Source: Selaginella moellendorffii
Lineage: Eukaryota > Plantae > Lycopodiophyta
DNA: 64,000 nt
Direction of reading: 5' to 3'
Assembly: GCF_000143415.4 (NCBI RefSeq)
Contig: NW_003314277.1
Coordinates: 1,749,185-1,813,184 of the forward strand
The translations under genes were made by a program, and so were the position numbers. The notes beneath the pieces were generated by a model. That model did not search any database. It had not been told where the DNA came from and saw only the letters and a program-made list of their open reading frames with translations. Below, in pieces: positions 2,106 to 50,299 of this stretch (positions are counted from its first letter, which is position 1; each line of letters starts with the position of its first letter).

Positions 2106-3877
2106 CTATTCCGCGGCGTTGCTACGACCACCTCTGTTGCCACCACCACGCCTGTTCGATCTTTGAGAGTCGTACCGGCGAAAGCCTGCCTCGTCAGTGC
2201 TCTCCACTCGTCGGTTGTATCCTCGACCACCACCATCACGATCGCCATAGCCGCCGCCTCTGTCACGGTCGCCGTAGCCTCCCCTTGCTCCACCCTCTCG
2301 ATCACCATAGCCTCGTCCTTCACCGCGGAAGTCCCGTCCACGTCCTCGACCAGAGCCTTTTGGCAAAGAAACGAAATGCTCGTTAGGAAATGACAGAAAA
2401 TGCTCGTTAAGGACGTACCTTGGGCCCTCTTGTACTCCACCTTTACAAACCGGCCACCAATCTCAATGCTATTGGATGCCTTGGAAAAGCAAGGGATAAG
2501 GATCAGAAGATGCAAAGCATAATTCTAAATGTTTCTTTACCTCCACAGCGCTGGACGCGGACTGTTGGTCTTCGAAATCAAGGAAAGCGAAGCAATATCC
2601 TTGTGCCTGCAGAGAGATGGTCACCATCGCTGCGAGCTGGATCGAAGGAAAGGAACGTTTACCTTCATAGACCGGACCTGAACGGAGCCAGGCTTGACTG
2701 GCCCAAACTTCTCAAACTTGGATTCAATCTCTTGCTCGGTAGCGTTCAAAGGCAAGTTGGAAATGTAGACACCTGAGACAAACAATGGTCATTACACAGT
2801 AGAGAGAAAAACGAAGAACATACCCTCCTTGTCCTTGTCGCTGGGAGGTTCTTCTACTGTGCTGGCGGCCGGAGGAGGAACCACAGTGGCAGGCTGCGGA
2901 GGGGCGCTCACTGGCGCTGGTCTCGGAGCCACAGGCCTTGGTTGAGCGGCCCTACTCTGAGCGAGAATGGAAGCATACGACATCTTCACCGTAGTCGTCT
3001 TCACCTGCTCTTGAAACTCCTCAGGTTGAGTTTGAGTCACAGTTGTCTCTTGGGTGATCGTCTCCACTTCCACCACCGCGGGCTCCTCCTCCACAGCCTC
3101 TACTTCAGGCTCATCGGGTGCCTTGTCCTCGGCCTTCTCCAGCACCACATACTCTTCGGATTGGAAAGTTTCCTCTGGCACGAGTCCTCCGCCTTCCAGC
3201 TGCTCGTCTGATTCAGAGAGAGACACGCGAGTCAGTCACTGATCTCGAAGCGTAATGACACTGACCTGGCTCTGGGATCGAGGAGACTGTGGACTCGGCG
3301 ACCCCATTGGCCATGCTGTATGGCAGTGTCTTCGCGGCTGGTGCTTCGTCAGCGTAGCGCAGCACGTCGTTCAGGACAAAGTACCCCTTCTCTTGTGGAG
3401 CGAGGAAGAACGTCTGCACAAAGTTGCGTTTCCCGGTCGACTTACACGAGAGGGAGCCAGTCACCATGACAAGAACTCCACCTCCGAGAGAGTTCTGAGA
3501 GACCACAGACTTAATTTCGGCCTTAAAGTCGGTGAGATCCATCGACATGATCTTCGCGTGGATATCCTGGAGCAGAGTAGATCAACAAGTAGCACACAAG
3601 AAAAAAAAAAAAACGAGAATTTACCTGTTGAGTGGAGACCGTCTCCACAGGACCATCTGCGCCACCAGAGTCTCGCGTAAGCTGGCTTTGATCGGTGTAG
3701 AAGCGATGAACCACCGCTGGAGATTGATGTAGGACGTTGTAGTACTGATTGATGAATGCATTCCCGACCTTGGCACAAAGAGGGAAAGAAGAAAGAAAAA
3801 TCAGCATCTTCCAAGTTTCGAGAAGCTATGGTGCTTACCAGATTAGCAGACGCTGGAGTAGCATTCGCTGTCGCCAT
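2106..3877 (-). CDS. G3BP-like protein (NTF2 domain + RRM + RGG tail), multi-exon
   Basis: NTF2 motifs VGNAFINQYYNVLHQSP and NFVQTFFLAPQEKGYFVLNDVLRY; acidic/Pro linker; RRM exons (VYISNLPLNAT.., IEIGGRFVKVEYKR); RGG-rich C-terminus; ATG (MATANATP) at 3877. Confidence 0.9.
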
Positions 3878-4146
3878 TTCACCCCTAGAATCAAGAAAAC
3901 CGCCAGATCTGAGAAAGCCGTGGAGAAAAGCAGCCAAAATTTGCGATCATCCACACATTGCGCTATCGATTCTACTCACCTCAGCAGTGCCGTGATCGAG
4001 CGATCCGCGCGGAGGCGCCTTGAAAACCCTCGCCAAAACCCTCGCGGCGACGAAACAGCCCTCTCTACCCTAAGGCCCAACGGACGGCCTGGATGCGTCT
4101 AGACTCATATGATCGATCCATGATCCATGTTTTTGAATCTAGGGCT

Positions 4147-5395
4147 ATGGCGCTTCTCTTGGGGCGGCTGTGCTGCGCTCCTCCGCGATCGAGCTTCTTG
4201 CGTGGATTATCGCACAGGGGGACGAACTCTCGAGATTTTTCGCGGATTTCTTGCGCTGCGGCTGCCGGCGGCAGCTCCTTGCTCGATTCTTCGCTGGAGC
4301 ATTGCCTGTTCGTCAGGAGATCCGTGAATCGCGGCGAGATCGTCGAGCATTCGGGTGCTGTGGTGGCATGGAAGCGTTTTCTTTCTCTTCTTGTTCTTGG
4401 CTAAGTTGGAATTTTCTCTTCTTGTTCTTGGCTGGACTTCAGGTGTTTGGAAACATCGAAAGAGGAGGCGCTGTTCGTGCCGACGGGGATGTGATCGTTC
4501 TGGGAAGCTTGGAAGGGATTTGCCAAGCTGGACGAAATGGCAAGGAGTCGATTGTTTTCTCTCTTGGCCGGGGATTTTCTTCTGCGATCGAGATCGCCAA
4601 CAATCCAGACGTTTGTGTCCGTAAGCCCGGCGGTGGAGAGGCATTCATAGCGATGGCTTCGACAAGGTCTCAAAGTTTGTGGAGATTTTTTGCTTTTGAG
4701 AAAACCTTGTGCCTGTGCAGCGTAGAACGGGATCACGTTAAAAGTTTCTTTGCTCGCTTGTCGAGGCCTGCCCGAGCTGCTTTTTTCACCGGGATCTACA
4801 TCTCCATAGCTGGGATTTGTTTCTTCGTTTTCCCAGAGACGCTCTTTGGTGAGACAAGTATATCAATCTCGTGTCGTGATTTTGATCATGCTACATGCAG
4901 GTCTTCTTTTCAGGCTGGAACATGTAGCACGGGGATGGATTCAAGCAACAGGAATTCTGGCAGTGGTAAGCAAACAAGGAACAGTATGTGCCGCTTACAA
5001 TTTGTGACTTTCAAGGTTTTTGGTATCTATTACTTGGGAACTTCGCTTGGTGACAGCCTTGGCTTCCATGGATCCTCGGCCTTTTATGCTTCCACTGTCG
5101 CCGGACGCATCGTGAGTTTTTCTCGATCTCGAAAGATGAAAAGGAAGTTATTCTCAAAGTAACTGACTAACCAACTTGGCATGCCTCTCGCAGTTCCTCT
5201 TCCTCAGCTTTTCGTGGCTTGTCAGCCGCGGTGCCTGTCCACCGCCTCTTCTCATTGTAAGTCTTTTACCATTACGTACATTCACAAAAGGGTTTTTTAT
5301 TTTGCTTTCGTCTTTAGGTTGGAGTTGTGAATCTCGCGGGTGCTTTGTACATGCTCGCAGCACTGAGGAACCCAAAGAAGGAGATCCGTACGTAG
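4147..5395 (+). CDS. Predicted plastid-targeted protein with MinC C-terminal beta-helix domain fused to a multi-pass membrane domain (7 exons)
   Basis: Spliced translation: transit-like MALLLGRLCCAPPRSS.., then RRSVNRGEIVEHSGAVVVFGNIERGGAVRADGDVIVLGSLEGICQAGRNG (MinC_C pattern), then ~4 hydrophobic segments, ending RNPKKEIRT*. Introns at about 4366-4442, 4667-4720, 4849-4900, 4966-5015, 5112-5193 and 5257-5317. Confidence 0.8.
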
Positions 5396-5523
5396 ACCCT
5401 GGTCGGTTTGCCACAATAAAATCGTCGTACGCTACAGGTATGAGGTTTTCTCGCCTTTCGGGGCTCGGAATTTAGAATTCAGCTTTCCAGGGCATTGGGT
5501 CTGGTAAAGAAGAGCTTGTAGCT

Positions 5524-6848
5524 ATGGATGTGAAGCGGCTGGATGACGACACGATGTTACAGATTCTTGGGTGCTTGGATACCGACGAGGATATCGCCCG
5601 TGCCGGTGCAGTGTGCCGCTCGTGGCACAGACTCGGTAGGATCTTGTCCCTTGAGGCGCTCAAGTTTTGGCTAATTGTCGTGCCGCAGTTGTTGATGGCC
5701 GACTTTGGAGGCGGCTGTGCATGATCCGATTTCCAGAGCTGGAAGTGTTTCGGGAGGTGGCTGAGCAATCCAGCGGTGTCGACTGTACTACTGTAGAGCT
5801 TTCTAAATCGCGGTCTGTGGAGGAGGACATTCTGAGACGCGAGCACAAGGTGTTCTGTGACTTCTACTACTCCCTGACGAGGACATCGTCGACGAGGAGC
5901 AGCTACATCTGGAATGCACTGCATGCTTCGAGCACCGACAATCCCAATGAGGACGTAATTCAGACGCTCTATCCACACCCGAAGCGGCTCTCGTCAGGCT
6001 CGCCGTCGTACTGGTCTAGCACAGGCCAGAAATTGGAAACTGTTCCAGAGTTTTTGACTTACCGGATGGTCACACCTCTGTGTGTCGTGGAGGAGATAAA
6101 GTTGAGGCCTTTTGAAGGTATGCTTGTACTTCCTTTCTTTCTCTTTTCAAAGTTCTAACTTTGCAATATGCGCTGCAGCTTTCTTTCAGTACGGGAGCCC
6201 AATCTACTCGCCGAAATTCGTTCGATTCTACTTTGGATACCAGGCTTGCCGTGCTCCTGGTGGACACTCTTGGAGCAATCCTCACCCCGATGGGAACTAC
6301 GTTTGGAAGTATGTTTCGCCGATGTATCCCGTGGAACAGGTATGGACTTGTGTTGTGATATATAGAAGGTTTTAAGCTTCTCTCTTGTTTTTGCGTGAAC
6401 AGGCTGATTCACTGCAGACATTTCGTCTTCCAAGGCCGGTCGTGTGCATTGGTGGAATCTTCCAGGTGGAGCTCGTCGGGCGTGTCCAAAAACAATCCAC
6501 GGATCAGCTCTATTACATCTGGTAAGCTCCAACATTTCTTTTTTCTCGTCCTTTCTCCGTTTCTCGTTTCGTGTCACGCTGATGATCTGATCTTCTCCTC
6601 ATCGTGGCAGCATCTGTCACGTATCGGCGCAAGGCAGCTCGCTCCAGCGGTACGACTTCGAGATCAAAGATCCCAAAAGCTTCGTGCTCAAGAGCCTCTC
6701 GAAACCGATAGAAGAAGAGAAAGAAGAGGAGGAGGTCGAGGAATTCTTTCGCGACGAAGAAGACGAGGAGTTCTTTCGCCGCCTTCGCCCGGAATTAATC
6801 GTGTGGGGAAGGCCGGTTTTCGAGGATGACGATCTGGGAGAATACTAA
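5524..6848 (+). CDS. F-box protein (At4g00755-like), multi-exon
   Basis: N-terminal F-box (LDDDTMLQILGCLD..IARAGAVCRSW); ASSTDNPNEDVIQTL, SYWSSTGQ, AFFQYGSPIYSPKFVRF and GGIFQVELVGRVQ motifs; acidic C-terminus. Confidence 0.82.
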
Positions 6849-31700: not shown

Positions 31701-32867
31701 CCACCCAGGAAATGGAAGTCGCCAATCTGGAAAACACCAACAACGTCAATAAGTATAACCAACTTTATCACACACCCAACAGCGAATATCACAGCCACAG
31801 CCATGACTACGTCCTTGCCCTTGTCCTTGGACTCGAGCAGCAATAGTATCAACCTCCATTGGAACAAGACCATCACCCATAGAAAGTGGAGCTGAAGGAT
31901 GTGCAGTGAGAAGTGGAAGAGGCGATGTCTCATAATATTGTGCCAAGCAAAGAGTATCGTCAAGGGTGGCGAGAGCAAGTGCATGCACAAGTCTGACAAG
32001 ATCTTAACAAAGTGCTGGCCACAACATTCCTAGCTTGATCCGCTTTGATATATTTGGCTTCGCACGAAGCAAAAGACTTCAGAAAAAAATGCCAAATTGC
32101 ATCACCAACTCAAATGGCCCTTGGCGAAGATGATGCAATTGTTGGAAGGCATAATCACAATCATTGGCATGTCTAAAGGTGCGTTTGAAGACATCCGGGA
32201 GAACACTCCAATCCCCACGGGTGGCTGCACTCAAACCATTGTACCACTACAATGCCATCCCTTGGAGACACGTAGGAAACTCATGCAAACGTCAAGTATC
32301 ATCTCAAGAATGATATGTAGCAATCACCATGAAGTGATTGAACCAATGATACATATCATCCCTAGGATTCCAGCGAAAAAACTCCGGCCAAATGCAAGGA
32401 TTGGCACCAAGAGCAGGAGGAGTTGTACCACGTGTTGTGAACGCTGCCATCAACTGAGTTTGGTTATTCAATTGCAAGTGCGTAGCATCAAGCAATTATA
32501 CCAATTGTTGCTCCAGAGTCAAAGGAGGAGATTGCTGATCTGCCATGAAAATGAACAAAAAAAAAGAGTAAAAGAAGAGAAATGACAAAAAGCTAGAAGG
32601 AAATGGTAGATCTAGATAATGCAAAAAGTTAGATCTAAACCAAAATCCCAAATCCAAGCACTCCTCAGGGACAATCAAAGGTTCCCCTCATCTCCACCAA
32701 TGTGAGTGCTTAGAATATGGAAAGGGAATGTGCATCCCAATTAGCCCAAAAACCCTACCTTATATACAGGAGCAAGTGGTCCAGATTAAAACCAATTTGA
32801 TGGCTACCAAAATCCCACTACGCTAATATTAGTATATGGCATTGTAGCCATACACTTGGCCCTCACA
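28768..32867 (-). mobile_element. Ty3/gypsy LTR retrotransposon with ~165-bp LTRs and tRNA-Ala PBS; decayed, with an internal deletion
   Basis: Direct repeats 28768-28932 and 32701-32867; PBS 32684-32699; PPT ~28933-28947; minus-strand gag knuckle remnant, protease (LVDTGS), RT (FIDDVLIHS), RNase H (DASNIGLGGVL) and integrase (ILSDNG, SAYHPQSN) fragments. Confidence 0.9.
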
Positions 32868-33075
32868 ATATGAAAATAATATTAATATATATAAATTTTG
32901 TTAAAAAAAGTGTAAATAATTGAGTAAAATATTTCTATTCTACTGTTAAAATATTTTAAGGCATAACCAAATATTTGAGGAATTCCATTATTCCATTTTT
33001 ACAATTTAAAAACTATATTTAAACATTATGATAAAAAAGTATCTGACAATAAAATAATATATTTATAATACATAT

Positions 33076-36000
33076 TGTGAAGTTGAAATGTATGGGTATA
33101 ATGCTGTATACTATTATTAACGTAGTGGGATTTTAAATTGGTTGTAATCTAGATCACTAGGGTTTTTGGGCTAATTGATATATATATTTCTATATTTTAT
33201 TTCTATATCTCATATATTCACATTAGTGAAGATGAGGGGTAGCTTTAATTGTCCCTAACGAGTGCTTGGATTTAGGATTTTGGTTTAGATCTAACTTTTA
33301 CATTATCTAAATCTCACCCTTTTTTATAATTTTTCNNNNNNNNNNNNNNNNNNNNNNNNNNNNNNNNNNNNNNNNNNNNNNNNNNNNNNNNNNNNNNNNN
33401 NNNNNNNNNNNNNNNNNNNNNNNNNNNNNNNNNNNNNNNNNNNNNNNNNNNNNNNNNNNNNNNNNNNNNNNNNNNNNNNNNNNNNNNNNNNNNNNNNNNN
33501 NNNNNNNNNNNNNNNNNNNNNNNNNNNNNNNNNNNNNNNNNNNNNNNNNNNNNNNNNNNNNNNNNNNNNNNNNNNNNNNNNNNNNNNNNNNNNNNNNNNN
33601 NNNNNNNNNNNNNNNNNNNNNNNNNNNNNNNNNNNNNNNNNNNNNNNNNNNNNNNNNNNNNNNNNNNNNNNNNNNNNNNNNNNNNNNNNNNNNNNNNNNN
33701 NNNNNNNNNNNNNNNNNNNNNNNNNNNNNNNNNNNNNNNNNNNNNNNNNNNNNNNNNNNNNNNNNNNNNNNNNNNNNNNNNNNNNNNNNNNNNNNNNNNN
33801 NNNNNNNNNNNNNNNNNNNNNNNNNNNNNNNNNNNNNNNNNNNNNNNNNNNNNNNNNNNNNNNNNNNNNNNNNNNNNNNNNNNNNNNNNNNNNNNNNNNN
33901 NTTATGGCAATGGCCATATACAAGCATGTGCACGGGATAAGGTAAACTTAGTGGTGCATGTGGGAATTTCAAACTTGAGTTATAGTTATTATGGGTGGTG
34001 CCAAGTTAAATTTTTGACCTTATCCTTGGTATGAATTGATTGCAACACAATTATACCAAATGTGACTTTGAACTTTTATTTCATATTTCTTTATATTTCT
34101 TCCATTCCTCTCACTTTTATTCCTTTTTTTCCTTTTGTGTCTACTTTTATTTCCATTACTTTTGTCCCCTCTTACTTCCTTCTATATTTTTGTCTTGTTC
34201 CTTTATTCCCTCTAGATTGCAACACGTCATTTTATTCTAATTGGGGATGCTCGTTCAATCATGGTTCTTGTTCGTCTTTAATCATTAAAAGAGATCAAAA
34301 TTTTATATACAAATATCAAAAAAATGTTGGAAAATGGTGTTATTCAAAGTCCTTAGGCTGATAGGTGTTTTTGCATCGACTATTACAAAGTGACAATCCT
34401 AGATATGTACCCTTTTCCTCACACTGCTAATGTTCTAGATCGTCTGGGAAGAAGTCATCAATTCACCAAATTAAATCTTGCTTTTAGGTGTTAACAAGTG
34501 TTGATGGCTAAGGAAAATATTCCCAAGATTGCTTTATATATACAATTTGGTTTGTAAGAGTTTTTGGTGATATCGTTTGGTTTGAACAATGCTCCAGTGA
34601 CTTTCCAGCAAATGATGAATGAGGTTCTTTGTGATATGCTAGAGGTGACTGCTGACTTCACTAATGATGTCTTAATCCACTCAAAAAGGATATAAAAGGA
34701 ACAAGTTCATGACATTCGTAAGATGTTAGATCAATTATGAGAAGGTAGTTTAAAGCTGAAGCGATCAAAGTGTGTATTTGGGTTCAAAAACACCATTTAT
34801 CTTGGGTACTATATTTTTTGTGAAGGTTTGCAATTTGATCTTAATAAACTTGTGGCTATTCTCAAATTCCCTACTCCAAAGTGTATGAATAATGTATAAT
34901 GCTTCTTAGGCAAGGTGCAATATCTCAGTTATTTTATTAATCATCTTTCTGATCGTACTGCACTATTGAAAGCATTATTAAAGTTGTTAACATTGTCCTT
35001 CATTTGGTCCATGGACTATGAGCAAGCGTTTACAGATCTTAAAGAGTTGTTCACGATTCCTTTAGTTTTGGTGTATCCTAACTACACTCGACCTTTCATT
35101 TTGCTCATGAATACTTCTGATATTAATATTAAAGGCATGTTGATGCAAAAGAGCCCAAATGTGTCTAATCTATGCCATCCTATTGCATATATCAATCATA
35201 CATTATAACTAATAAAAGTGAACTACTTCACTACAAAGAAGGAGTGTTTAATAATAATTTGGGGTTTTTGAGAAACTTCATGCATATCTACATGGTTTTC
35301 AGACTTTACTAGAGAATGATTATATTGCAGTTACTTCATTATTGAAGCATAAGGACTTGGTTGGTTATATTGCTTAGTGGGCTTTTAAGTTTCAAATATA
35401 TGATTTTGATATTGTTTATTGCCTGGGGAGTTCTATAGCTAATGTTAATGCCTTTTTTCGAGTTCCTTTTCCTTTTTCACTCTTTTATTATATTTTTAAC
35501 AAGTATGTTGTTCTAGCATCTGTGGATTTTTTGGACAAAGATTTCATATTATTCATAGTTGTTGTACTTAATATTCAATGTCCATAAAGTGCAAAGCAAA
35601 ATTTACCTTCTTTTAATAAGGTTCGTGATGTTCAAAAGGTTGAGCTATCAATTTAAAGGCTTTGGGATGGGTTTGAGAATCCTGCATCACTTGCTGATGA
35701 GTTACAATTTTAACTTTTACATTCTCAATATCATTTTGAGGACGATCTTCTTTATTATGTGAGGACTAATCCTGATGAGAATTTATAGTGGTGCCTTCTA
35801 TATTTATTCCATGCTTTCTCCATGCGTACTATAATTTTCCTATTTTAGGTGGGTATATGGGACATCATTGTGTGACTATGAAGTTGTGGAAGTCTTTCTA
35901 TTAATCAAAGATGCAACATGATGTTATCTAATATATGCGTAGTTACATTTAGTGCCAAGCTTGTAATATTCCCCCTTGTGTTGCAAAAGGACAATTGGAG

Positions 36001-37069
36001 TCAATTGCAATTTCCCATCCATTTGAGTTAGTGGTGTTTGATCTAATAGGGTATTTTTCACAGTTGACTACTGGCAATAAGTATGTCATTATTGCTTTTA
36101 ACTATTTGACTCATTTGGTGGAAGTCAATGCTCTTGTTAATGTGTCTGCAATTGTTATTGGATACTTCCTCCTCTATCAAGTGGTATTTTAACATTTCTA
36201 TCCAAAGTGAATTCTTTCAGATAATGGTCCCACATTTATGGTTGAAGCATTTTATATTTTAACATCTCGATTGGGGATATGTCACACTTTCACAAATGCT
36301 TATTATCCACAATCAAATGATTTGGTGGAATGACTCGTTCGGACTTTCAAAGGCATGATTAAAAAGTACGTGAATTTTTAGCATTTGGATTGGAATGGTT
36401 ATTTGCCATCTTTTTTATATGTGTATATTATAGGGGTATAGAGTTAACTCCGATATGGTTATAATCTGATACTACTAATGAGTTGAGTTTATCTTCATGA
36501 TTGCCACAAGTTGCCGATGCTAGGTCTTGGGATCAGTATTTGATAAGTATTCCTCCACTAGTTTGAGCAGAGTTTGTTGAACATTTGAGCTGCATATAAG
36601 TAGAACAACAATGGCACTAAAACTTTTATTATTATCCACCTGCAAAGTATAAAGTGAATGACTTGGTGTTAGTTTATTTTCCCAATCTTATGGTACATGG
36701 TTTTTCTAAGGGGATCCTTGCTTAGTGGAAGTAGCCATATTAAATATTGCAACAAGTTAGATCACAAATTTATGAGGTTTAGTATGACATCCAGCAAGCC
36801 AATCCTCTAGAAATTATGCATGTGCAATAATTAAAACGCTTCATAGAAAGAGGATTATAAACAGTTAATACCACTTATAAATCAACTAATGCCTTCTCAT
36901 AATGTTCTTTTATATCCCGGCTACAATGCCATATATTAGTATAGTGGGATTTTCATAACCATCAGATTGATTTCAATCCGGAGCACTCGCTCTTATATAT
37001 AATCTAAAGTTTTTTAACTAATTGATATATACATTTCTGTATTCCATTTCCATATTTCATGCACTCACA
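33076..37069 (+). mobile_element. Second, more degraded copy of the same short-LTR gypsy family in opposite orientation (spans the N gap)
   Basis: LTR-like 33076-33220 followed by a decayed PBS (TTAGTGAAGATGAGGGG); RT/RNase H/integrase sequence colinear with the reverse complement of 29000-31400; 3' LTR remnant ending CTCACA at 37069. Confidence 0.85.
33336..33901. other. Assembly gap (N run)
   Basis: Run of n characters. Confidence 1.
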
Positions 37070-37910
37070 ATTAAGTTTTTCATAGATATTAAAAGTTATA
37101 TTTGATGAAAGCTCAAAAGCCTTTTTATATTTATATTTGTCAGAATGATGAGATGGGTGTTTCTGGAGTAGAAGCACCTTATAAATAATTTTCACTCATC
37201 AAGCAAGTTAAATTTAAATGAAAATTTTATACATGTAGATAGAAAATTAATTTATAGTTTCTAAATGAAACTTGGTATTAAATGAGCTTACTCTGTATTT
37301 ATTTTAAAATATAAAAATTTGATGTATGGCAAATACATAATACAATGGTATAACAAAGTGATAAAAAATAGCAAAAATGAAATTAAAATAAAAATATTCT
37401 AATACTTTTCTATTTTATTTTTTCGAGGATAAAAAATATTTTTAATTGTAAAATTTTATTTTTTGCTAAAAAGTAGTTGGTCATGAATAAACTTTAAAAG
37501 TTTTGATTAATTTACTCATGTTTTTGTACCAGTGTATCATGTATTTGCTGTACAGTAATTGAAAATACTATCTTAATAACTACCTATAAAGTTTTTCACA
37601 GAATATTCTTTTAAATTTTCTTGCAATAAGTTTTTCCTTTTTTAAGTTAAATCATAATTTTGGAGAAAGTGTCACAACTTATTTGAAACCAATATTCTTA
37701 TGGGGGGCAGAGGAGAAGGCGAAGAGGATTTCAGCCGCTAGACACCTATTTGAACCTTTGAGTCTCATGCTCCTTGTTGGTGGGAGGGGGGACAGAATGA
37801 ATTATACTTATGGGATCTTTGAAAGAGAAGCTATGAAACGTGAAGAGAATAAATTAGTGGCGAGCCAGCAGCGGAGATAGGAACTAATGTCCTATTCATT
37901 ATATTATAAA

Positions 37911-39064
37911 TCATAGTGAGTCATTTTCATTTTGCTTGTGTTGCTGTGCTGCTTCTTCCACAAACCCTCCATACACGTAGGATCCAAAGCTCCAAATCGT
38001 AAGAAGGATTGACATTACCTTAAAGCCGCTCATGTTGTCCCCAAAAGACAGCACCGCCGCCACCGCTGTCAATGGAACTCTAGCCGCATTCAGAACTCCA
38101 GCAAACAAAGCCGACGTCAAGTAGAGCACTGCCACCCCGGCAAGAACCCCCAGCTGATTACTCACCGAAGCCCAAACGAGCACCATATAGTAAGCCACGG
38201 GGCCATGCTTGAACGCCTGGGACTCGCCACCCATGTCTCCAAAGTCACCACTGGCGATCACTCCCACCACCGTGAACAGGCACGCAAATATCGAGGTGAC
38301 CACCTGGAGCTCGAGCACCAAGTGCACAGCGGACCCAACCTTCCTGTCCAGGAGCTTGACAAAGACGAGCTCCGAGAGAACAAAGATGAGGCCGTGGAGC
38401 GCTGATCCAGCAACGTCGAGCACGAAGCCGATGAGGTACTGCCTGCTCGTCGTCCCTGGCGGCCTGTCGGAGCTCGAGTCGAGGCCGAGGATGACGGCCC
38501 CGGCCGTCATGATCGCGATGGAGTTGACGCTGGACGCATTGAGCTTCTTGTGGACGAGCAGCCACGCAAAGATGGCGGTGAAGGCGAGCGAGCTGGAGGC
38601 CAGCAGCGTGGACGTGGATGCCGGCAAGTAAGCGTAGCTCCAGGCGAACATGAAGTTATCGGCGGCGCTGAGGAAGCCAATTACCGCGTAGGCGAGGAGG
38701 AGCGTCCAGGTCGGGCGTGTTGGGGCGATGCCGCGGACTGGATAGACGAGCAAGAGGATGATAGCCGGGAGAGGCCACCCGGCTGATCCCACCCATGTAA
38801 GGAGCCAGCGATGGGAGCCGCCATTGACGTAGTAGAGCCGGAAGAGGATGCTCGACACCGGGAAAGCGACGAGCATTGTGAGCGTGCTTAGCACGAGTAG
38901 GATCCAGAAGCTCGCGGACATTCTCGAGTAGACGGCCCATAGCGCGGAGAATTTTGATTGTACTGCTGCGCGGCTGCTGCCACCTAGATGGATGCAAATC
39001 CAAGCAAAGCTAGGCTTTATGGAAAGAGTTAGAGGAGCTACTTACCATCCTCGTGTTCCGCCAT
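37911..39064 (-). CDS. Purine permease (PUP family, PUP5-like; DMT superfamily), 2 exons
   Basis: LVAFPVSSILFRLYYVNGG..WL..W...AGWP, GFLSAADNFMFAWSYAYLPAST and ~10 TM segments. Micro first exon MAEHED(G) at 39046-39064; intron 38984-39045. Confidence 0.9.
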
Positions 39065-39394
39065 AGCCAACAAACACTTCTTTAGGCCTGTCATTCTCCT
39101 TGCGAGCGAATATACCTGGTAGAGTTTGGGACTTGTCCCAATGATGCATTTGCAGTAACATAGAGCATAGAGCGAAAGTTTCTACTTCAGGTGCTACTTA
39201 ACAATATACCTTTTTGCGATCGGAATGTTCCACCAGAAAACATCTCAATCTTCCATCTTGTAAAAGACTCCCAAGACGTCCGCTGCGCGCCCGCACTTTC
39301 CATACATTTCTCCATGACAAGGAACCTAAATGCCGCTGCCATACTTATTTTGGAAGAGGGGAATATCATTCACCACATTCTCATACGATTGTTT

Positions 39395-41324
39395 TCAAAA
39401 GCTGTGCCGCATCGAGTGATGGATTTTCTTGCGCGTCAAACGTTTTGAGTTACACATCCGCGAGAGTAAGTCCTTGCTGCGATCATCACACATCATCTGT
39501 AATGTAAGAAAAAGATGGTTTTCAAAATCGTTTATTTGGAACATGAGTACTGTTCTAACCAGCTGCGAGACAAGCGTGTAGAGTGGTAGTGTGTTATAGC
39601 TGCAAAGAACTTGGACAAAGATCCTGAAAGCTGAGCAAGTTAAATATTTAAAGAAGATAAATTACTTTACCCGATAACAACATGAACTATCACCGCTATT
39701 TTGTTGTCTAAAAGACATGAATCGATCCCAAACTCTAGCTATAAAACAAATAAAAATATAAAAGAAGAATAGGTGACGACGACATTACCCAGATCCAGAA
39801 AAATAAAGTCAAGCCAAACGAGTTCTGCATGTCCACAGTTTTTCCTCAGTTTTTTTTCATTTTATTCCAAAATACCTGGAAGATAATGAAATGAAAGACG
39901 TAAAGGAAGGACTGGGACTTCGGTTGCATTTCCTCGTTGAACTTAGCATTACGTAATTCAAGCTGGAGTTTAGTGCCCATGATCAAAAGAAGCTGCATTT
40001 CAACGAATTAGCTAGCAAATTAGTATAGAAGTCACGCTTAACTCCCAATGGTATGAATGCCATCCACACGAACGTGTGCCACCCTGAACAAATACTATGA
40101 GAAAATTGTATTGCAACATGCAAATGGGGCTTACCATTGATGTTTAGAAGGAGAAACAAGATTACACAAATCCAAAAATAGGCACTGCCATCGATTACGA
40201 GAGTGAGAACCAAAATCAAACACAGCGATTTCTAAGAACCTGATTCCAATGACCGTTCGAAAGTCATCACCCAGTACCATGCATAAGTACTTGTGAAAAT
40301 TGAACTGCGGGATCAATCCATGTTTCTAAAAGTTAAAAACGCGTTAGATCTTCTGGAGAGTGTTATATTTGAAGCTTTGCAATACTCGGATGAAAGCTTG
40401 ACGGATGGCTTGGTAGTCTGACTTAGTCACAGAGATTCCAAGTTGCTGGAAGCAACAAACCTGTAAGCTTGGGACAAATGAGAATTCTTTGATAAAGTTC
40501 TGAACAGAAACCCACAGTGACGGCAGTCATGGTTGAGAAACACAGGTGGCTTAGGGAAGCTGGAGGTGATGTCTCACTTGTGTCATCACTGCATTTGCTA
40601 AGTTCTTTCTCCCACTTCCACCATGACCACATCTGATAGACATACTTGGAAGAACAAAAATAAAACCCAAGTTTTTACCTTTGCTCTACTTAGTAGCAGG
40701 GTCAAGCAACAGCACGAGAGATGAAGAGCTCCCAAAAGGAATATCAAAATGTGAAGGTAATGGATATCTTCGCTCTCGATCAGTGTAACTTTGCCCTGCG
40801 AAAAGACAGCACCAAAAGTAGAAAAACCAAAGTAACCAAATGGGACTTTATGTATATACGAACATTTCTTTCGCAAGTGTTCTTCGAACGGCTGTGTCTT
40901 CTATAGCTTTCACGGCATGGAGTGATGCGCGCACTGACCCCAAGAGTCGATGAGACACAAAAGAGTTCCCCCAGCAATTGGAAAGCTCCGAGAAGAAGCG
41001 AGATGGAGCCAAGCAGCATTAACTCTATCGATTGATATAAGTTAGAAACTTACTAGACAATAGACAATGCCATTTACCTTCTTTCAATCCTTGCAATGCA
41101 GCATCTACTTGGATCCATTTGCGTCGCTTGAACCACTGGAAAACAAATCATGGAATTTATATGGCATTGTGTTATTACCTCCAAGAGAGCTTTAGACCGG
41201 CTTTAGAGCAAACCATGGTAGTAAAATGGACCACATTCTTGATGGCGAGGGCCAGAAGAACAATGACAGAGCACACAGCGGCAATGGCCCAAGTTGGAGC
41301 GTCCTGAATCCTCAAAGCTTGCAT
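39395..41324 (-). CDS. MLO: MLO family seven-TM protein, divergent, multi-exon (3' end uncertain)
   Basis: DAPTWAIAAVC, LKEELMLLGSISLLL, HYLHILIFLLGALH, FNFHKYL...GDDFRTVIGIS, LLLNINGWHTFVW, GTKLQ, FQNSF and QVLCSYNTLPLYTLVSQ. Confidence 0.85.
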
Positions 41325-44300
41325 TGGAACCAATCACACTTTTGGGGGAATTCGTAAAGAGAGCAAGAGAGCTTTGCCTTTTACTCTTCGTAAGAAAGGG
41401 AGTGAGAGTAGCAAAGCAAGAGATGCCCACTAGACGGCTGCGGCCTATGGAAAGGAGACATAGAGTCGAGCACATTTAAGCGGCATCCATTTTCTTTTCT
41501 TACTTTCTCGCAAGTCTCTTTCATCTGGCTCCGACTTGGCACTTTGGAACAATCAAACAAATCTTTAGTGTAGTTCAAAACCAAACACGGAGATTGGTGG
41601 AGTCCACAACTTCTGAGGAAGATCTTACGCAAGGCCGCTGGAGTTTCGTAGACAAGTTTACGGAGTTCCTGCTTTGATTGGCAAGTTAAATTTGAGTGAG
41701 GACTATTTCAGGAAACTTGGAGAGACGTTTCGCAAGATTATATTATGACCTAGATTCTGGTTGGGAGTTATAGAACTCCACATTAATTTGCAATTCAGTA
41801 GTAACAATGGAAATTTACTTGAATTATTTTGAATACTCAGTAAATATATACATTAAAGTTACACTCAAACCTTATATTAATATGCTACACTCAGCAATAA
41901 CACCAGGATTACATAAATGTTTTACATAAATAAAGTTTATATTACAGATTGATATGATATGGGTTTGATGAATTGATTGTTTTGGTGTACAATTGTCAAA
42001 AGTAGAAGAATACTCTAAAATATACTTAGATATTCTAAAAGTATTCATTAAATAAAATCTTTGTTACAATAGGACTCACCACCAAATGAAAAGTTATTTA
42101 TTGTAAAATTTTACCAAAAGCATATCCAAAAGCATACATAATGAATATAAACAAACATATATTTGAGTGAGCTATGCATTTCATGTAGATAGGGTTTAGA
42201 ACCTTGCTTCATAGTGGGATATTGACATCTCTCCAAGTTTCTTAAAATAGTCCTCACTCTTCAAATTTAAATTGCCAATCAAAAACAATGTGCCAACCAA
42301 CCTTTATCAAACTTATTCAAACTTAGATCTTCTTTAAAAGTTGTAGACTCCTAGGTCTCTCTTTCTCTCTATGATAAGCTTTTGACAAATTGAACACTCT
42401 AATATCAATAGTTTTCTTAGATCCTTTTCTTTAGCTCTAATTAGGTCTTAATACTCTACAGAAGTTATATAAAGCATTAGAGCAATTTAATATAATACTT
42501 CACTCACAACTTAACAAATTTATTCAACACCAACTTTCTAATTTAGAGCCAAAGATTAGTATGCCAATCCAGTAGTGCAGGAATTATTGTCACTATGGAA
42601 CTATAAATCTTTAGAACCTTTGGGGATCAATAAAGATAAAATAGTTATTAAGAGCTTTTTCATTAAGTAATTTCCCTTTTTCTAGTTTACTTAAGGAAAA
42701 AGAGATAGAGTATGCTACAACATCTAATCCATATTTTTGGAATTCCTTCTTACGATACTGATCTGCCTCTTGAACTTAGGGTCCTTGTTAGATTTGCTTT
42801 CACTCATCTGCTGTTGCAAAATATATTTTATATATTTGATCACAAAAATATAGGAATTGTTCAATTGGATAAGTTATACCTCCTCCTTATTTTGGCTCTA
42901 GTTTCTTCTTGATGGATCTTTAAGCTTTTTATATTATTACTCACTTTCAGTCCACTATATCTAACTTCTCTTTTTAAAAGTGTTAATAGAAATTTCAAGA
43001 TTTTGTACTTTCTCATTGTATTCTCTTTTGACTAGCATAAAGTCTAACTTATATTAAAGTGGTGAATGGTTAACAAATCTCCTTTGGTTTTATCACACAT
43101 GAGAGTAAGTTGGTAAAAATGATAACATTTGAAGGTCTTCATCATTCTTAATTTTCCTTAATTTGAGTTGGTGACTTAATAGCAGATTGGAAGTAGCGAA
43201 TGAACAATTATCCCCTTCTCTAAGTCTTTGTTCTTCTGCTTTTACAATCTAAATTTCTCACATTTCTTTGCATGAGTTATGAGTTCTAACACTTTACTCT
43301 TTATAGAGCTTACATAGCTCTTTTGCCATTATGAAGATCATCATTTAGGTTCTTTGGTTGGATGTTATACTCCCTATGACCAATATTGTAAACTAACAAT
43401 ATATTGACATAGAAGAATATTTGGTAAAATTGTTGAGGTAGAGTGTAAATTTCTTAGCAGGCAATGTTGACTTGATCACCTTGGGCTCCTTAGTATTGAT
43501 CTCAAAGTAGTATGATCCCATCCTTTCTAAGAACTTATGATATAAACCTAGAAGTACTAGCACTCTTTTCTCTTTCTTCCATGAATTTATGATATTAACT
43601 TGGAAAAATTAGCTTGATCTGCTCTGACATATTTGGCTCCACATGAAAGTCTAAATTGTCAGTCTCGAAAATAGGACTTCAGAATTATAATAGTGTTAGA
43701 ACCACTTGTATATATAATAATGTCTTTAAGGCTCAATTGCTCATCCTTCATCTCCACTTCAAACAGGTGCTTATTTCCTTGAAATTGATATCATACTTAT
43801 GAAATATGGCAAGGAGAGCTATTTGGTGCTTGCAAAACATTGGTCAATTAGTGTTGTTATAGAGATATGCTAAAAATGCCTTCAATAATTAAAATGATAT
43901 ATCCTCCATCTCAATTATGAAAGTCTTCCTCTCTCAAGTCAACTAAAAAGTGCTCAAAATCTAACTTGTGCATTACAAAAATATCATGCCTATACCCAAT
44001 GCTTAAACTCTATTGATATGCAAAATGAACTGATAGGATTCCCACTTTATGCAACACTAAAAAAGTCATATGTGATATTGATATGGATTTTACATGAGGT
44101 GGCATTTGAAGAATTCATATATGTACAAAACCATCATGCATGCATTCCAATATATGCCCATACCTTGAAAAAATGTTGTATCCAAAAGATTATTTTTGAG
44201 CCACATATCTGTTTAAACAATTTAAATATACATGTTTTAAATTGATTTGTCTTGCAGTAAAATTTTGAGCTCTTTGCAATGTCACCTACCTAAGGTACAC

Positions 44301-44359
44301 CTCCTTCCAAAACATGCCTACACATCCATAAAATTTTTTATCACTTGGATAATATTATA

Positions 44360-44780
44360 GTGTATATGGTTTTCACCCTTTATATTCCATATATATACCT
44401 CATAAGTAGATCTAGATACTTTTTATAAATAGCCAATAGAACTGAATGGGACCAACATATGGGAAATGATAGTGAGGGTGTCTTAAAAGATATGGCAAAC
44501 TATCATATAGTGATATTGAAGGATTAGTGCTCAATACATGAGGGTTCTTGTTACTAGTGAGATAAATTTTTTTTACTGAGCTAAGTCTACTTAAATAATA
44601 ACACATAGAAATTATGTCTTTATGCTAGTCCAATCTAAATGACTTCAAAATACCCATTTAACTTTAATTATAGAAGGACTGTTAAAAGGCCTACCAATAC
44701 TAATTTTTTACCGTCATAGTAGTAAAAGAAGAATATTTGAAAAAACTTGCTGACTTATAACTTTTAATACCCACAATTAC
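44360..44780. repeat. Degraded copy of the LTR-like repeat also present at 47340-48290 and 48440-49395
   Basis: Shared block GATAGTGAGGGTGT..ATGG.AAACTATCAT and colinear flanking sequence. Confidence 0.6.
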
Positions 44781-47339
44781 ATTCGTGATATGCTCCCCTC
44801 TTTAAAAACATCAATATCCTCATAAATGCATACTTTAGTTTAAACCACCACTAAGGAAACAACTCCACATTCAGTTCAAAAAATAATTAACCATCTTAAA
44901 GAATGGCAAAATCATCAAATATCAATGATAGTCAGGCAAGACCTTTAACAAAAATAATCGGCTATCCCAAATAAAAATCAATTATTACCAATGAATGCAA
45001 GATATAGAAGTTAATTTGAATATCAAAGATAATGAGCCAAAATACCTTTTCTAACAACTCTTAACAAATGAAATAATAAGTATGAAAACTCAAATAACCA
45101 AAACTCAAAGAAGTCTATAACCAAATCTTGTATAATAATGATCATAAATTTTGCATTAATTAACTTTAATACTAAAGATGAATTCATAATATAACGCACA
45201 ACATGTTTCCCAGCACATCTAAAGCTTTATAATGCAAAAGCTAATGAAGAATATATATGCATTTATCCAAAAGCTAAACATAACAAAGCATATTAGTTTT
45301 GCAAAAGGAAGAGTTAGTAATTGATAATTGGAATTGTTAGATCATTGTTAAACTTGAGTTGACATTATCAATCATTGATGATCCTTATTATGCTTGTTAG
45401 CAAATGGATTTATAAAGGATTAATTTGATGAACACTTATTAAGTATAGTTCATAACTAAATAATTCTTTCAAGGAAAAACCAAAGCTTAAACCTCTACTA
45501 AGCAATCTCATCTAGAACATAGTTAACCCAACTTACCATTCAGTTTATTTGAACATTAATATAGTTGTTAACTAGCAAAATACATGAATGCTAATGATAC
45601 AAAGATATGGCCTAAATAATCAACACCATCTTACGAGATTAGTGAAACAAAATATCAATCTCCAATAAACCCAAATAATCATCAATCACTATAGATGAAA
45701 AATTTAACATCCTCAATATGCCTATAAAGAAATATTTTGTCTCACTTTAGTATCAATGTCAAGGCATCACTTCAATGCCATTAACACCAAAACAAAGCAA
45801 AAGTGAACCACCACTTAAAACTCTTTAACAACCAACCTAACTAAGATCAAAGATACCTTATTGAATATTTAAGACCAATATTTTAATAATATTTAACTAT
45901 AAATAACAAATCATCAAAATGTAAATCGCCATGTCTAAGTAAAGTGTCAGCAGTAATTAATAAAGTCTACAAGCAATCACTAGTTGCAAGTAACTAACAA
46001 TTACCTTTTAACTTATGTTCATAAGACTCCAAACACTAAACTCATATAATTGAGTCATATAAGAAAACGCTTTAGATACAACATAAGGATCATGAACAAG
46101 TATAGATAAAATAACTACTCAAATTCAATTATACAATGATAAGCCTATCAATATGTTTAGCTAATGACTTTAAGTATAATTAAAGAGCTAGTTATGAATG
46201 ATCAATGCTTAGCCAAAACTAAAGTAAGGCCCATTAGAATAACTAAGTTAAACATCACTATCCTTAGTTAAGGCATGCTATTAAGACTAAGTCAATATCA
46301 AGGAGAATTCACTATTCTTATAGAGTTTAACCAAATATAAAGTGCTCAGAAAAAAAAGCATATAAGGTCATCTTTCTAGAGAAGTGCAACAATGACTTTT
46401 CTATTCTAATTCTAAACTCTATTTAACTCAATTGATTTAGATCTAAAAGTTAACATCCCTTAAAGTCACATCACACAAACTACTTACTAAGTTAACTGAA
46501 GTAATTACTAATCCTTTCACCAGTTTGTAATGGTTTATAAAAACAAAATGGTTTTTGAGCAAAATGATCAATAAATTAATCATTGGAAAAGCTTAAGAAA
46601 ATTTATGGAAAATCTTCCATTCTAGAGAAAGAATAACCTTCAATCTATGAATGTAAATTTTCAAAACTCAACTAACTTCTTTTTATTTATAACTTCACAT
46701 AGGTTCACCTCAATACAAATTCCCATGACCCATTAGTATACCTAAGTGATGAACACCATGCTATATATCTGATATCCAATGTTGATTGTTACAAATGCTA
46801 ATAAATACCCAAGACTTTATCTTAAATACCATATCTTCAAATATTTATATCATACTAACACTCTTCAATCATTTTCAAGATTTAGTATAGAATCAAAAAA
46901 TTAACAAAAAAAATAATATGAAAAATCAAACTCTAAGATAAACTCCCTATCACTTGATATAGCTATATTATTTCCACTAACACAAATGCTAGCAATACCA
47001 ATGCACAATTTCTTCATTTAACAATTTACTCTAAGTGGTAATAGATCCATTAACAAGCTATAGTAAATGAATGTTATAATTTTTCCAAAACCTCAATAAG
47101 CAAACTCTTAAGGAAACAAGGTACTCTCACCAACTTAATATAATAGATCACTTTTGAGAATATAGTTAAAGCTAATACAATGCTACTACTTGTAAGTAGA
47201 CTATCATCAACCACTTTGGGGTTAATTGTTATTTGACCAACTAGCTTTACAAACACATTGCTCATGATCTCAAGGATATAATATAAAAATTAAAATAACG
47301 TGATCACCAATTGAGCAATATTATAAACACATTCATGTC

Positions 47340-48290
47340 ACTTATAGAGCACTTGAATTTAGAGCCGAACTCCAAGCCTGTTGTGCTACAAAACGAGGGT
47401 CTGATACAATCCCATGAGCATCAACTCCTCACATCCAACACTTGCACAAAATGGTGTTAGATGGCATCTAGCACAATTTTGGTATACTAGTGGCCTAACA
47501 CGAGGAGGAGGGTACCTCATCGACTAGAGTAGCATGGAGTTTGGGCTTAGACCCAAGCTAGATGCAGAACAAGAAACGATACAGCCTAGCAGGAGCCAAA
47601 TTAATGTTTCAGGTGGTTGAATATGCATTCCAACCACTATCCCTACTATATATTTGGAACCCCTTACAGTGCCCCCCCGCCCCCCCCCCCCCTCTCCCCC
47701 GCTCTTGAGGAACACATGCTTTGGGCTTTCACCCCAAACCTCCCTTAGTACTAGAAGTTAGTCTTTGGGACAAGCTCGAAACTTATTAAATATGGAATGT
47801 CTTTAGATTGCGAATTTAGATATAAGATGAACACCATTGTGTTCAAGACAATTTTTACACTCTGTAGATATGCCAAATGAGCAAATCTAGACACTTTCCA
47901 TAAATAGCATTTAGCCCAAAATGAGACTAACCCAAAGGGCATGATAGTGAGGGTGTTTAGCAGACATGGTAAACTATCATTTAACGAATATTAAGGGACT
48001 AATCTCAATATTATGGGGGTTCCTAACACTAGCAAGTACAAGCCAACAACATGAGTTTCTCGTCACCATATCAAGTATGCTTGACTTAATGACAACTTAA
48101 GATTTCCTTCCTTAGCGCCCTTTTGGTCTAAGTGCACATGTGTTGACTAGTTTTTCAACTAGCTTGGGTGGAGACCATAAAAGGCAACTAGCAATACCGA
48201 CCTCCTATTGTCATGGCAGTAAGGAAAGAGTGTCTATAAGGATTGGCCGACAAATATCTTTCAATACCTAAAGTCACATTTGCGACTACA
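47340..48290 (-). mobile_element. Solo-LTR-like repeat; inverted partner of 48440-49395
   Basis: Reverse-complement similarity to 48440-49395; contains the poly-C + GCTTTGGGCTTTCACCC block found in other LTRs of the window. Confidence 0.6.
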
Positions 48291-48439
48291 AAGATTTAGT
48301 CTAGTATCTAATATTCACTCAAACAATAGAATGCAACACAAATGCCACATCCCATCAATAAAGATTTATAACACTTAACACCATCAATTTTAAACTCAAA
48401 GTTAATCTAACACTAAGCAATTCAAATGTCAAGAATATG

Positions 48440-49395
48440 ACTTTAGGTATCAAAAGATATTTGTCAACCAATCCTTATGGACATTCTCTTTTTACTTCTA
48501 TGATGACAGAAGATTAGTACATCTAGTTCCTTTTATAGTTCCCATTTGAGCTAGTTGAGAAACTAGTTAATACATATGTATTTAGATTAGATAAACATAA
48601 GGTAGGAACCCTTATATATTTTTTGTTGAGCATACTTATTTTGGTTTGAGAAACTCATGTTATTTTGCACTTGTTAGTATCAAGAACTCCTACAATATTG
48701 AGCTTTATCCCTCAATTGTTATGTGATAACTTATAGTGTTTGCCAGACACCCTTACTATCATGCCCCATGTGTTGGTCCCATTTGATTCCATATATTATT
48801 TATAATAAGTATCTAGATCTGTTCAAGAGGTATATTTATGGAATGTAAAAAGTGTCTTGAATACTATAGTGTTATTTCTGTGTCCCAATTTGCAATCTAG
48901 CATCATTCCATATTTAGTAAGCTTTTAAGCTTATCCTAGAGATTAACTCTTAGAATTGGGGTGAAAGCCTAAAATATGTGTTTCTTAGAGGGGGTTATGG
49001 GGAGTTCCAAATATAATATGTATAGTAGGGATAGTGGTTGGAAGCACAATTGACCATATTAGATATTAGTTTGGTTTCCACTAGGCTGTGTCACTTTTTG
49101 CTTTACATTTGGCTTGGGTTTAATTAGTTTAGCTTCTATTGGGCTCTATCACTCTTTATTCTGCATCTGGTTTGGGTTTAAGCCTAAATTCCATATTGCT
49201 CTAGTCTGTGAGGTATCTTCTTCTTCGCGTTAGGCCATTGTATGCTGAAATTATACTAGACTTTGTCTAACACTATTTTGTATGTAAGAGCTAGATACAG
49301 GGAGCTAGTGCTCATAGAGGATATTGAGTGCATACTAAACTTTCACTTCATAGCACAATGGGTTTGAAGCTCATTTCCAAATTCACGTGTCCTAC
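48440..49395 (+). mobile_element. LTR-like repeat ending ..GTCCTACA
   Basis: Inverted copy of 47340-48290; GGGTGAAAGCC..TTCCAAA..TATAGTAGGGATAGT block; followed by a decayed PBS-like TTTGATATTAAAG. Confidence 0.6.
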
Positions 49396-49419
49396 ATTTG
49401 ATATTAAAGGAATTGTTTC

Positions 49420-50280
49420 TTGAGCTTCTTGACAAAAGTCATATCTAACTAAGTGAGTTAACTTATGGAGTGTTAGTCCTTTTTGTTATGAAAAAGGATG
49501 GTACTATGAGGATATGTATTGATTATTGAGCTCTCAACAAGATCACAGTCAGAAACAAGTATCCTCTTACATTGATGACTTGTTTGATCAACTTTTAAAG
49601 GCTAAATATTTTACATGACTTGATTTGTAGTCCAATATCATCAGATACGAGTGGTAGATCAAAATGTGGAGAAGACAATCTTTAAGACTCATTATGGGTT
49701 TTGTGAATTCCTCGTTATGCCATTCGGGTTATTAATGCCCCAGCTATGTTTAGTACAATGATGGATAGAATATTTGGAGATTATTTGGGCACATTTATTA
49801 TTCTATATATTAACAATGTTCTAGTCTTCAATGAAGTGATGGAAGATCATTTAAAAAAATTAGAGTTTATGTTTCAAAAGTTGCAAGAGAACAAATTATA
49901 TGCTAAGGAGAGTAAATGCATTTTTGATCAATTGCATGTGAATTTCCTTGGGCATATAGTTGGTGGTGGTGTATTCGAGGTGGATCCAAAGAAAGTGGAA
50001 GTGGTGAAGTCCTAGGAAGTCCTAACCACTATATTAAATGTTTGTTTCTTTATCAAATTTGTTTACAATTTTGCAAATATTGCTCTTTTGTTAACTAAGT
50101 TAATGAAGGGTAGTATATCGTTTCATTAGACACTAGCTTATCAACATGATTTTGTATGATTGAAAGAGATTTTGACTACAATTCTTATTCTTAAGATTCC
50201 AAATCTTGATAAACCCTTTAAAATGCATTATGATGCATCTAGCTATGCCATAAGTGCCGTGTTACAGCAAAATTGTGATA
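49420..50280 (+). mobile_element. Ty3/gypsy RT/RNase H remnant
   Basis: LFVMKKDGTMRICIDY*ALNKIT, YINNVLVF, KLYAKESKCIF and YDASSYAISAVLQQ, with stops and frameshifts. Confidence 0.85.
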
Positions 50281-50299
50281 ATACAGTTAGTGTTACACT

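Follow-up and report, generated by a model that had tools for sequence, protein, structure and literature searches.

In bacterial MinC, the dimer interface and an FtsZ-inhibitory activity both reside in the C-terminal domain, and in E. coli MinC a conserved RSGQ motif mediates the binding of MinD (PMC6803595). The functional analogue of MinC in plants is ARC3, which negatively regulates the assembly of plastid FtsZ at places other than the division site (PMC13650779). According to current reviews, plants have lost MinC and use ARC3 instead, and a 'MinC-like' sequence of moss appears in them as a footnote. The moss gene has featured in reviews of plastid division from Yang et al. 2008 onward; the sequence in question is evidently Physcomitrium patens XP_024395735.1. 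A Chlamydomonas MinC homologue is listed in one paper. A full-text literature search returned no description of the missing N-terminal domain (MinC_N), the membrane domain, its stand-alone relatives or the decay of the MinD-contact motif that are reported here. Green-lineage MinC-like sequences as such have been noted since 2008.

The gene analyzed here lies at 4147-5395 on the forward strand of a 64,000-nucleotide stretch of Selaginella moellendorffii DNA (contig NW_003314277.1, positions 1,749,185 to 1,813,184), referred to as the window. Its product, specified by a single transcript, joins a MinC C-terminal domain (MinC_C) to a membrane domain and lacks the MinC N-terminal domain. The spliced translation from an ATG at 4093 is identical to NCBI XP_024531668.1 (LOC112346587 isoform X3, P0002, 308 aa), which carries the label 'uncharacterized'. 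The gene is compact, with seven exons separated by short introns of 50-82 nt, and both the ATG at 4147 and the stop codon at 5393-5395 are exactly where a first-pass annotation of the sequence had placed them. The features are as follows.

4093 to 4146, + strand: upstream in-frame ATG and 18 codons, MRLDSYDRSMIHVFESRA (NCBI model; RNA contig coverage).
4147 (4093) to 4365, + strand: exon 1; from ATG 4147, a transit-peptide-like N-terminus (4147-4308), then the first MinC_C beta-helix turns.
4309 (residue 73), + strand: start of MinC_C within exon 1 (Pfam match).
4366 to 4442, + strand: intron 1, GC-AG, 77 nt (joint 4364→4442, shiftable by 2, in runs X1 and X6).
4443 to 4666, + strand: exon 2; MinC_C core and its divergent, shortened end, residues 92-165 (Pfam; model).
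4721 to 4848, + strand: exon 3; amphipathic linker helix (residues 167-178) and membrane helix 1 (RNA joint 4666→4721; model).
4901 to 4965, + strand: exon 4; end of the short surface helix (204-211), loop, and start of membrane helix 2 with the conserved W221.
5016 to 5111, + strand: exon 5; membrane helix 2 and the first half of helix 3, with the conserved G233, Y236, F253, Y254 and T257 and the invariant R261 (RNA joints; model).
5194 to 5256, + strand: exon 6; end of helix 3, loop, start of helix 4 (RNA joints; model).
5318 to 5395, + strand: exon 7; helix 4 with the conserved N288 and A292, basic tail RNPKKEIRT, stop codon.

The gene model was checked against contigs from four runs, each belonging to a different study, aligned to 4000-5600. 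The runs were only guessed to be RNA, but the contigs skip the introns and so are RNA-derived. All six predicted splice joints were found in them, and the joint that connects the MinC exons to the membrane exons (4666→4721) was present in all four runs. Both domains are therefore on one mRNA, and the earlier concern that they might belong to separate transcripts is removed. The protein tail GVVNLAGALYMLAALR is present as previously read. The exon 1-2 junction had to be corrected: intron 1 is of the GC-AG type, and the protein continues from SGAVVV directly into FGN. Both haplotypes preserve the reading frame, and only one substitution separates them inside the MinC_C region.

Some contigs depart from this structure. 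An alternative 88-nt form of intron 1 (joint 4353→4442, read as GT..AG) occurs in run X5 and would shift the frame, and intron 1 or intron 2 (4667-4720) is retained in some low-depth contigs. Intron 2, 54 nt long, contains no in-frame stop, and its retention would lengthen the linker between the domains by 18 residues. For the second haplotype (LOC112348022), NCBI annotates two truncated isoforms. The 212-aa P0001 stops after membrane helix 1; the 170-aa P0003 ends in AMASTRTGSR, consistent with the use of an acceptor 5 nt into exon 3, and would contain MinC_C only and be soluble. The alternative joints for these isoforms were found in none of the four runs examined.

Contigs with the last exons of the MinC-like gene pass the stop codon, splice out 5435-5487 (GT..AG, joint 5434→5488) and enter a downstream gene with an ATG at 5524 and an F-box-like N-terminus (MDVKRLDDDTMLQILGCL...). 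Either the 5' UTR of the downstream gene overlaps the 3' end of the MinC-like gene or transcription reads through; the contigs fit both. On the other side, a divergent neighbor is formed by a minus-strand ORF at 3461-3937, reading ...VGNAFINQYYNVLHQSPAVVHRFYTDQSQLTR, which we take to resemble an NTF2-type domain. A contig of depth 651 runs from this neighbor across 4000-4357, indicating that the 5' ends of the two divergent genes may overlap. Farther away, 32000-52000 is markedly AT-rich (GC 0.29-0.36, compared with 0.44-0.54 in the remaining window) and may be repeat or transposon sequence.

There are two candidate in-frame starts, at 4093 as in the NCBI model and at 4147, either of which is possible; the start codon of the Marchantia protein aligns with the methionine at 4147. 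The N-terminus is Ser/Arg-rich and acid-poor, with 11 S+T, 6 R+K and 2 D+E among the first 50 residues, and is disordered in the AlphaFold2 model. The protein is nuclear-encoded and, as this transit-like composition suggests, probably targeted to the plastid.

The MinC pattern noted on first reading is real and lies far above the level of chance. In a Pfam search, residues 73-143 match MinC_C (PF03775) with an E-value of 3.9e-13 and 49.7 bits (cut-off 33.2), and exon 2 by itself clears this cut-off (35.6 bits). A phmmer search of PDB sequences retrieved the MinC proteins of T. maritima (E 3e-9) and Aquifex (E 2e-8). An AlphaFold2 model of the whole protein was built from a 33-sequence alignment of the family. 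In this model, the beta-helix of MinC_C is predicted with pLDDT >90 at residues 70-125, and the confidence is low at residues 125-165. The top Foldseek matches in the PDB were all MinC C-terminal domains (4v02, 5xdm, 6riq and 1hf2, probability 1.00 each), and 5xdm superposes on the model at 1.4 Å over 76 columns. The last third of the domain is shortened compared with the liverworts, the Pfam match covering positions 1-71 of 102. The Selaginella MinC_C is the most derived of the family, with a terminal branch of 2.73 against a median of 0.16 and an odd composition, and its ancestral activity may be partly or wholly gone.

Only 72 residues precede MinC_C (54 when counted from the ATG at 4147), which bears out the earlier view that there is no room for MinC_N. 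The Selaginella protein gave no Pfam match to MinC_N (PF05209) at E-values up to 1. A profile of the MinC N-terminal region, made from 80 bacterial proteins that are mostly cyanobacterial, recovered all 80 of them and gave only negative bit scores on 33 family members. The NCBIfam whole-protein MinC models also stayed far below their cut-offs: TIGR01222 scored 40.6 against 95.25, and the best scores of the equivalog models TIGR01222 and PRK00513 were 40-47 bits against cut-offs of 95-486.

Compared with bacterial and cyanobacterial MinC, the right-handed beta-helix of the C-terminal domain is the shared part: sequence and predicted fold match the solved domains, and algal members of the family are up to 54% identical to cyanobacterial MinC_C. 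The differences lie in the FtsZ-inhibitory N-terminal domain, which the Selaginella protein lacks, in the RSGQ motif, which is degenerate, and in the fused four-helix domain, which is found in or beside none of the 80 bacterial minC loci examined. RSG is present in 79 of 80 bacterial sequences and in E. coli. Several algal members retain R-x-G-Q (Mesostigma RGGQ, Cymbomonas RAGQ), and Chara (ATGQ) has lost the arginine of the motif, as have all land-plant members (Selaginella NRGE, Marchantia CDGE, Riccia GDAE, Calypogeia HNGE, Physcomitrium SSGE).

The Physcomitrium protein XP_024395735.1 is a known protein of the same family and architecture. It shares with the Selaginella protein the transit-like N-terminus, MinC_C, linker and membrane domain and falls in the same land-plant clade. 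Pfam recognizes a complete MinC_C in the moss (82 bits, positions 2-99 of 102), whereas that of Selaginella is shortened and more divergent. With ARC3 the likeness would be one of proposed role only, negative regulation of plastid FtsZ assembly. The two proteins have no sequence relationship, and ARC3 is described as stromal while the Selaginella protein is predicted to be membrane-integral. Neither an FtsZ-like domain nor MORN repeats, the features of ARC3, were found in a Pfam scan of the Selaginella protein.

The 'about four' hydrophobic segments of the first-pass annotation are four long helices in the model (about 184-202, 221-242, 251-272 and 280-299, pLDDT >90), accompanied by one short surface helix. 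Modeled alone on 65 homologues, the domain (residues about 181-300) gave a mean pLDDT of 94.6 and a pTM of 0.87. Over these 65 sequences, Y192, P204 and R261 are invariant and T189, G190, W221, G233, Y236, F253, Y254, T257, N288 and A292 are nearly so, which is more conservation than a simple anchor needs. The identity between Selaginella and the liverworts is 50-59% in the membrane domain and 37% at best in the MinC part. The proposal that the protein has its own membrane anchor is thus correct as to the presence of a membrane domain, but a mere anchor does not account for a domain that is better conserved than the MinC part and also exists alone. The charge distribution around the helices carries no clear positive-inside signal.

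The membrane domain matched no Pfam or NCBIfam family, and searches of the PDB and the ESM Atlas yielded no convincing structural counterpart. Soluble prenyl synthases were considered as fold relatives and rejected: in a VIA-align run on 48,161 PDB chains the best Z was 9.9, below the chance level of ~13 for helical bundles. Tim22 and respiratory complex I chains of 131-142 residues appeared as weak Foldseek matches (probability 0.4-0.66) and were not taken as evidence. A structure search of the ESM Atlas gave TM-scores of 0.52 or less, and a feature search of the same resource gave a score of 0.85, which is a lead only.

To determine the range of the family, a membrane-domain profile was run against 1.84 billion representatives of 50%-identity clusters and gave 342 proteins. 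In a local iterative search, MinC_C was found upstream of the membrane domain in about 40 of the 150 listed among these 342. The two-domain members include the liverworts Marchantia polymorpha (annotated as MinC), M. paleacea, Riccia and Calypogeia, the moss Physcomitrium patens (XP_024395735.1), and Chara, Mesostigma, Cymbomonas and Tetraselmis; one marine metagenome cluster also belongs to the fusion family. All named eukaryotic members found are of the green plastid lineage. The alignments and the iterative search show that the fusion is conserved across this lineage, including the moss 'MinC-like' gene, in line with the mention, when the locus was first read, of MinC-like sequences in some non-seed plants and algae. 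A word-index protein search with the 33-sequence alignment was swamped by low-information words, returned only 3 matches and was uninformative on the taxonomic range.

The membrane domain also occurs without MinC, behind a transit-like N-terminus, in Volvox, Picochlorum and many chlorophyte-like sequences, and two distant homologues lie on metagenome contigs, one of them in a typical bacterial gene neighborhood. These stand-alone proteins of core chlorophytes, such as Volvox XP_002952444.1, and of uncultured bacteria are homologous to residues about 181-300 of the Selaginella protein, with profile E-values of 1e-10 to 1e-28 and the same conserved residues. They differ from it in having no MinC_C and belong to no Pfam family.

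Separate trees were built for the two domains, as suggested at the outset, and both place Selaginella with land plants. In the membrane-domain tree, the eukaryotes form one clade with 100% support, and Selaginella falls in a nine-sequence land-plant clade with liverworts and moss (98% SH-aLRT). The support for the land-plant grouping on the MinC_C tree is 83. Judged by these relationships, the Selaginella protein is orthologous to the green-lineage 'MinC-like' proteins. The stand-alone forms lie mostly in one chlorophyte subclade with fused forms at its base, a pattern consistent with an ancient fusion and later loss or duplication among chlorophytes. Five proteins, P0009, P0012, P0013, P0016 and P0021 (loci L001-L003), with full-length MinC_C and membrane domain on intron-free transcript contigs, form a well-supported clade inside the land-plant group, apart from mosses, liverworts and Selaginella.

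Bacterial relatives of the MinC part were collected from 185,579 prokaryotic species, one genome per species, with patterns derived from four algal MinC_C sequences, yielding 561 relatives. Of the best 80 of these 561, about 70 are cyanobacterial, with 47-54% identity to algal MinC_C, and the rest are mostly Chloroflexota. Algal-derived patterns bias which genomes enter the set, so the closeness to cyanobacteria is supportive rather than decisive. In a 115-column MinC_C tree, 28 of 29 green sequences group together (87%) and the cyanobacterial sequences with three strays form a clade (95%), and the branching order among the green, cyanobacterial and Chloroflexota groups has no resolution. The cyanobacterial-type origin proposed earlier thus holds insofar as the nearest bacterial MinC proteins found are cyanobacterial, but the tree cannot separate cyanobacteria from Chloroflexota. 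Descent from a bacterial MinC, with a cyanobacterial source, appears most likely. No gene for the membrane domain was found within 3 kb of the 80 bacterial minC loci.

The architecture suggests a plastid membrane-tethered remnant of MinC that acts on the division ring without recruitment by MinD, a reading to which we assign a probability of about 55%. A bacterial MinC ancestor would have lost its N-terminal FtsZ-inhibitory domain, and the C-terminal four-helix membrane domain would have been acquired early in the evolution of the green lineage. After import, the four helices would become embedded in a membrane of the plastid, with the inner envelope as the most plausible choice. The even number of helices would leave both termini on one side and so keep MinC_C in the stroma. 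There, the beta-helix could still dimerize and contact the FtsZ ring, as the bacterial MinC C-terminal domain does. The built-in membrane domain would replace MinD as the route of MinC to the membrane, and the decay of the MinD-binding motif in streptophytes may reflect that recruitment by MinD became unnecessary once this domain was fused. Unlike an oscillating inhibitor, such a protein would stay fixed to the membrane and regulate or tether plastid FtsZ filaments from there. A partial loss of function of the Selaginella protein is a real possibility.

The alternative that survives best places the working part in the membrane domain, with MinC_C serving only as a dimerization or scaffold module and having no role in the placement or inhibition of the division ring. 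The better conservation of the membrane domain relative to the MinC part and its survival alone in chlorophytes hint that the main function lies there. The invariant or nearly invariant Y192, P204, W221, Y236, F253, Y254, T257, R261 and N288, the distant stand-alone forms in a bacterial gene context and the disappearance of the MinD-contact motif point in the same direction. However, MinC_C, its glycine/GD core intact, has stayed beside the membrane domain all the way from prasinophytes to a vascular plant, and a mere dimerizer need not remain as recognizable a MinC as the 82-bit Pfam match in Physcomitrium. Reviews also suggest that in moss the MinC-like gene may make up for the absence of ARC3 (PMC10030945). 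On balance, a function confined to the membrane domain is rather unlikely, but it deserves serious weight.

It is considerably less probable that the Selaginella gene is a decaying relic, its MinC part on the way to being lost, as it is in seed plants, and the gene itself persisting only by virtue of the membrane domain or by chance. The long branch, the odd composition, the shortened last third of the beta-helix, the lost RSG motif and the truncated isoforms annotated on the other haplotype (P0001, 212 aa; P0003, 170 aa) would all be expected of such a gene. Yet the frame is intact in both haplotypes, which differ by one substitution in the MinC_C region, the transcript is correctly spliced in four independent studies, and the core of the beta-helix is modeled at pLDDT >90.

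A mitochondrial Min system of non-cyanobacterial origin has been proposed for some heterokont algae, where predicted-mitochondrial MinC- and MinD-like proteins have been reported in Nannochloropsis and Ectocarpus (PMC3499364). Applied to the present family, this explanation is very improbable and was rejected, since the best bacterial matches are cyanobacterial rather than proteobacterial and the named eukaryotic members found all belong to the green plastid lineage; the same study treats the green-lineage proteins as presumably cyanobacterial (PMC3499364). That two adjacent genes were misjoined, a general risk of automatic models given some color here by the contigs that also continue into the downstream F-box gene, is refuted by the exon 2-exon 3 joint in spliced contigs of four studies and by the recurrence of this domain order in about 40 representatives of distant taxa, several being encoded on intron-free transcript contigs, and has next to no chance of being correct.

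A bolder reading, to be taken with more doubt than confidence, concerns the green lineage as a whole: early in its history, recruitment by MinD would have given way to covalent fusion with a strongly conserved and hitherto undescribed family of plastid membrane proteins, one that also stands alone in chlorophytes and, at a distance, in bacteria, and plants up to at least the lycophytes would keep a membrane-integral, MinD-independent regulator of the plastid FtsZ ring. Were this true, the MinD-contact motif would have decayed once the fusion had made it redundant, and the final loss of the fusion protein would coincide with the sole reliance of seed plants on ARC3. The membrane domain, for its part, would define an uncharacterized family of plastid membrane proteins. 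The moss MinC-like sequence of the reviews is one member of a family spread through the green lineage as far as a vascular plant, and where ARC3 is missing, as in Physcomitrium, this family could be a candidate regulator of the plastid division ring.
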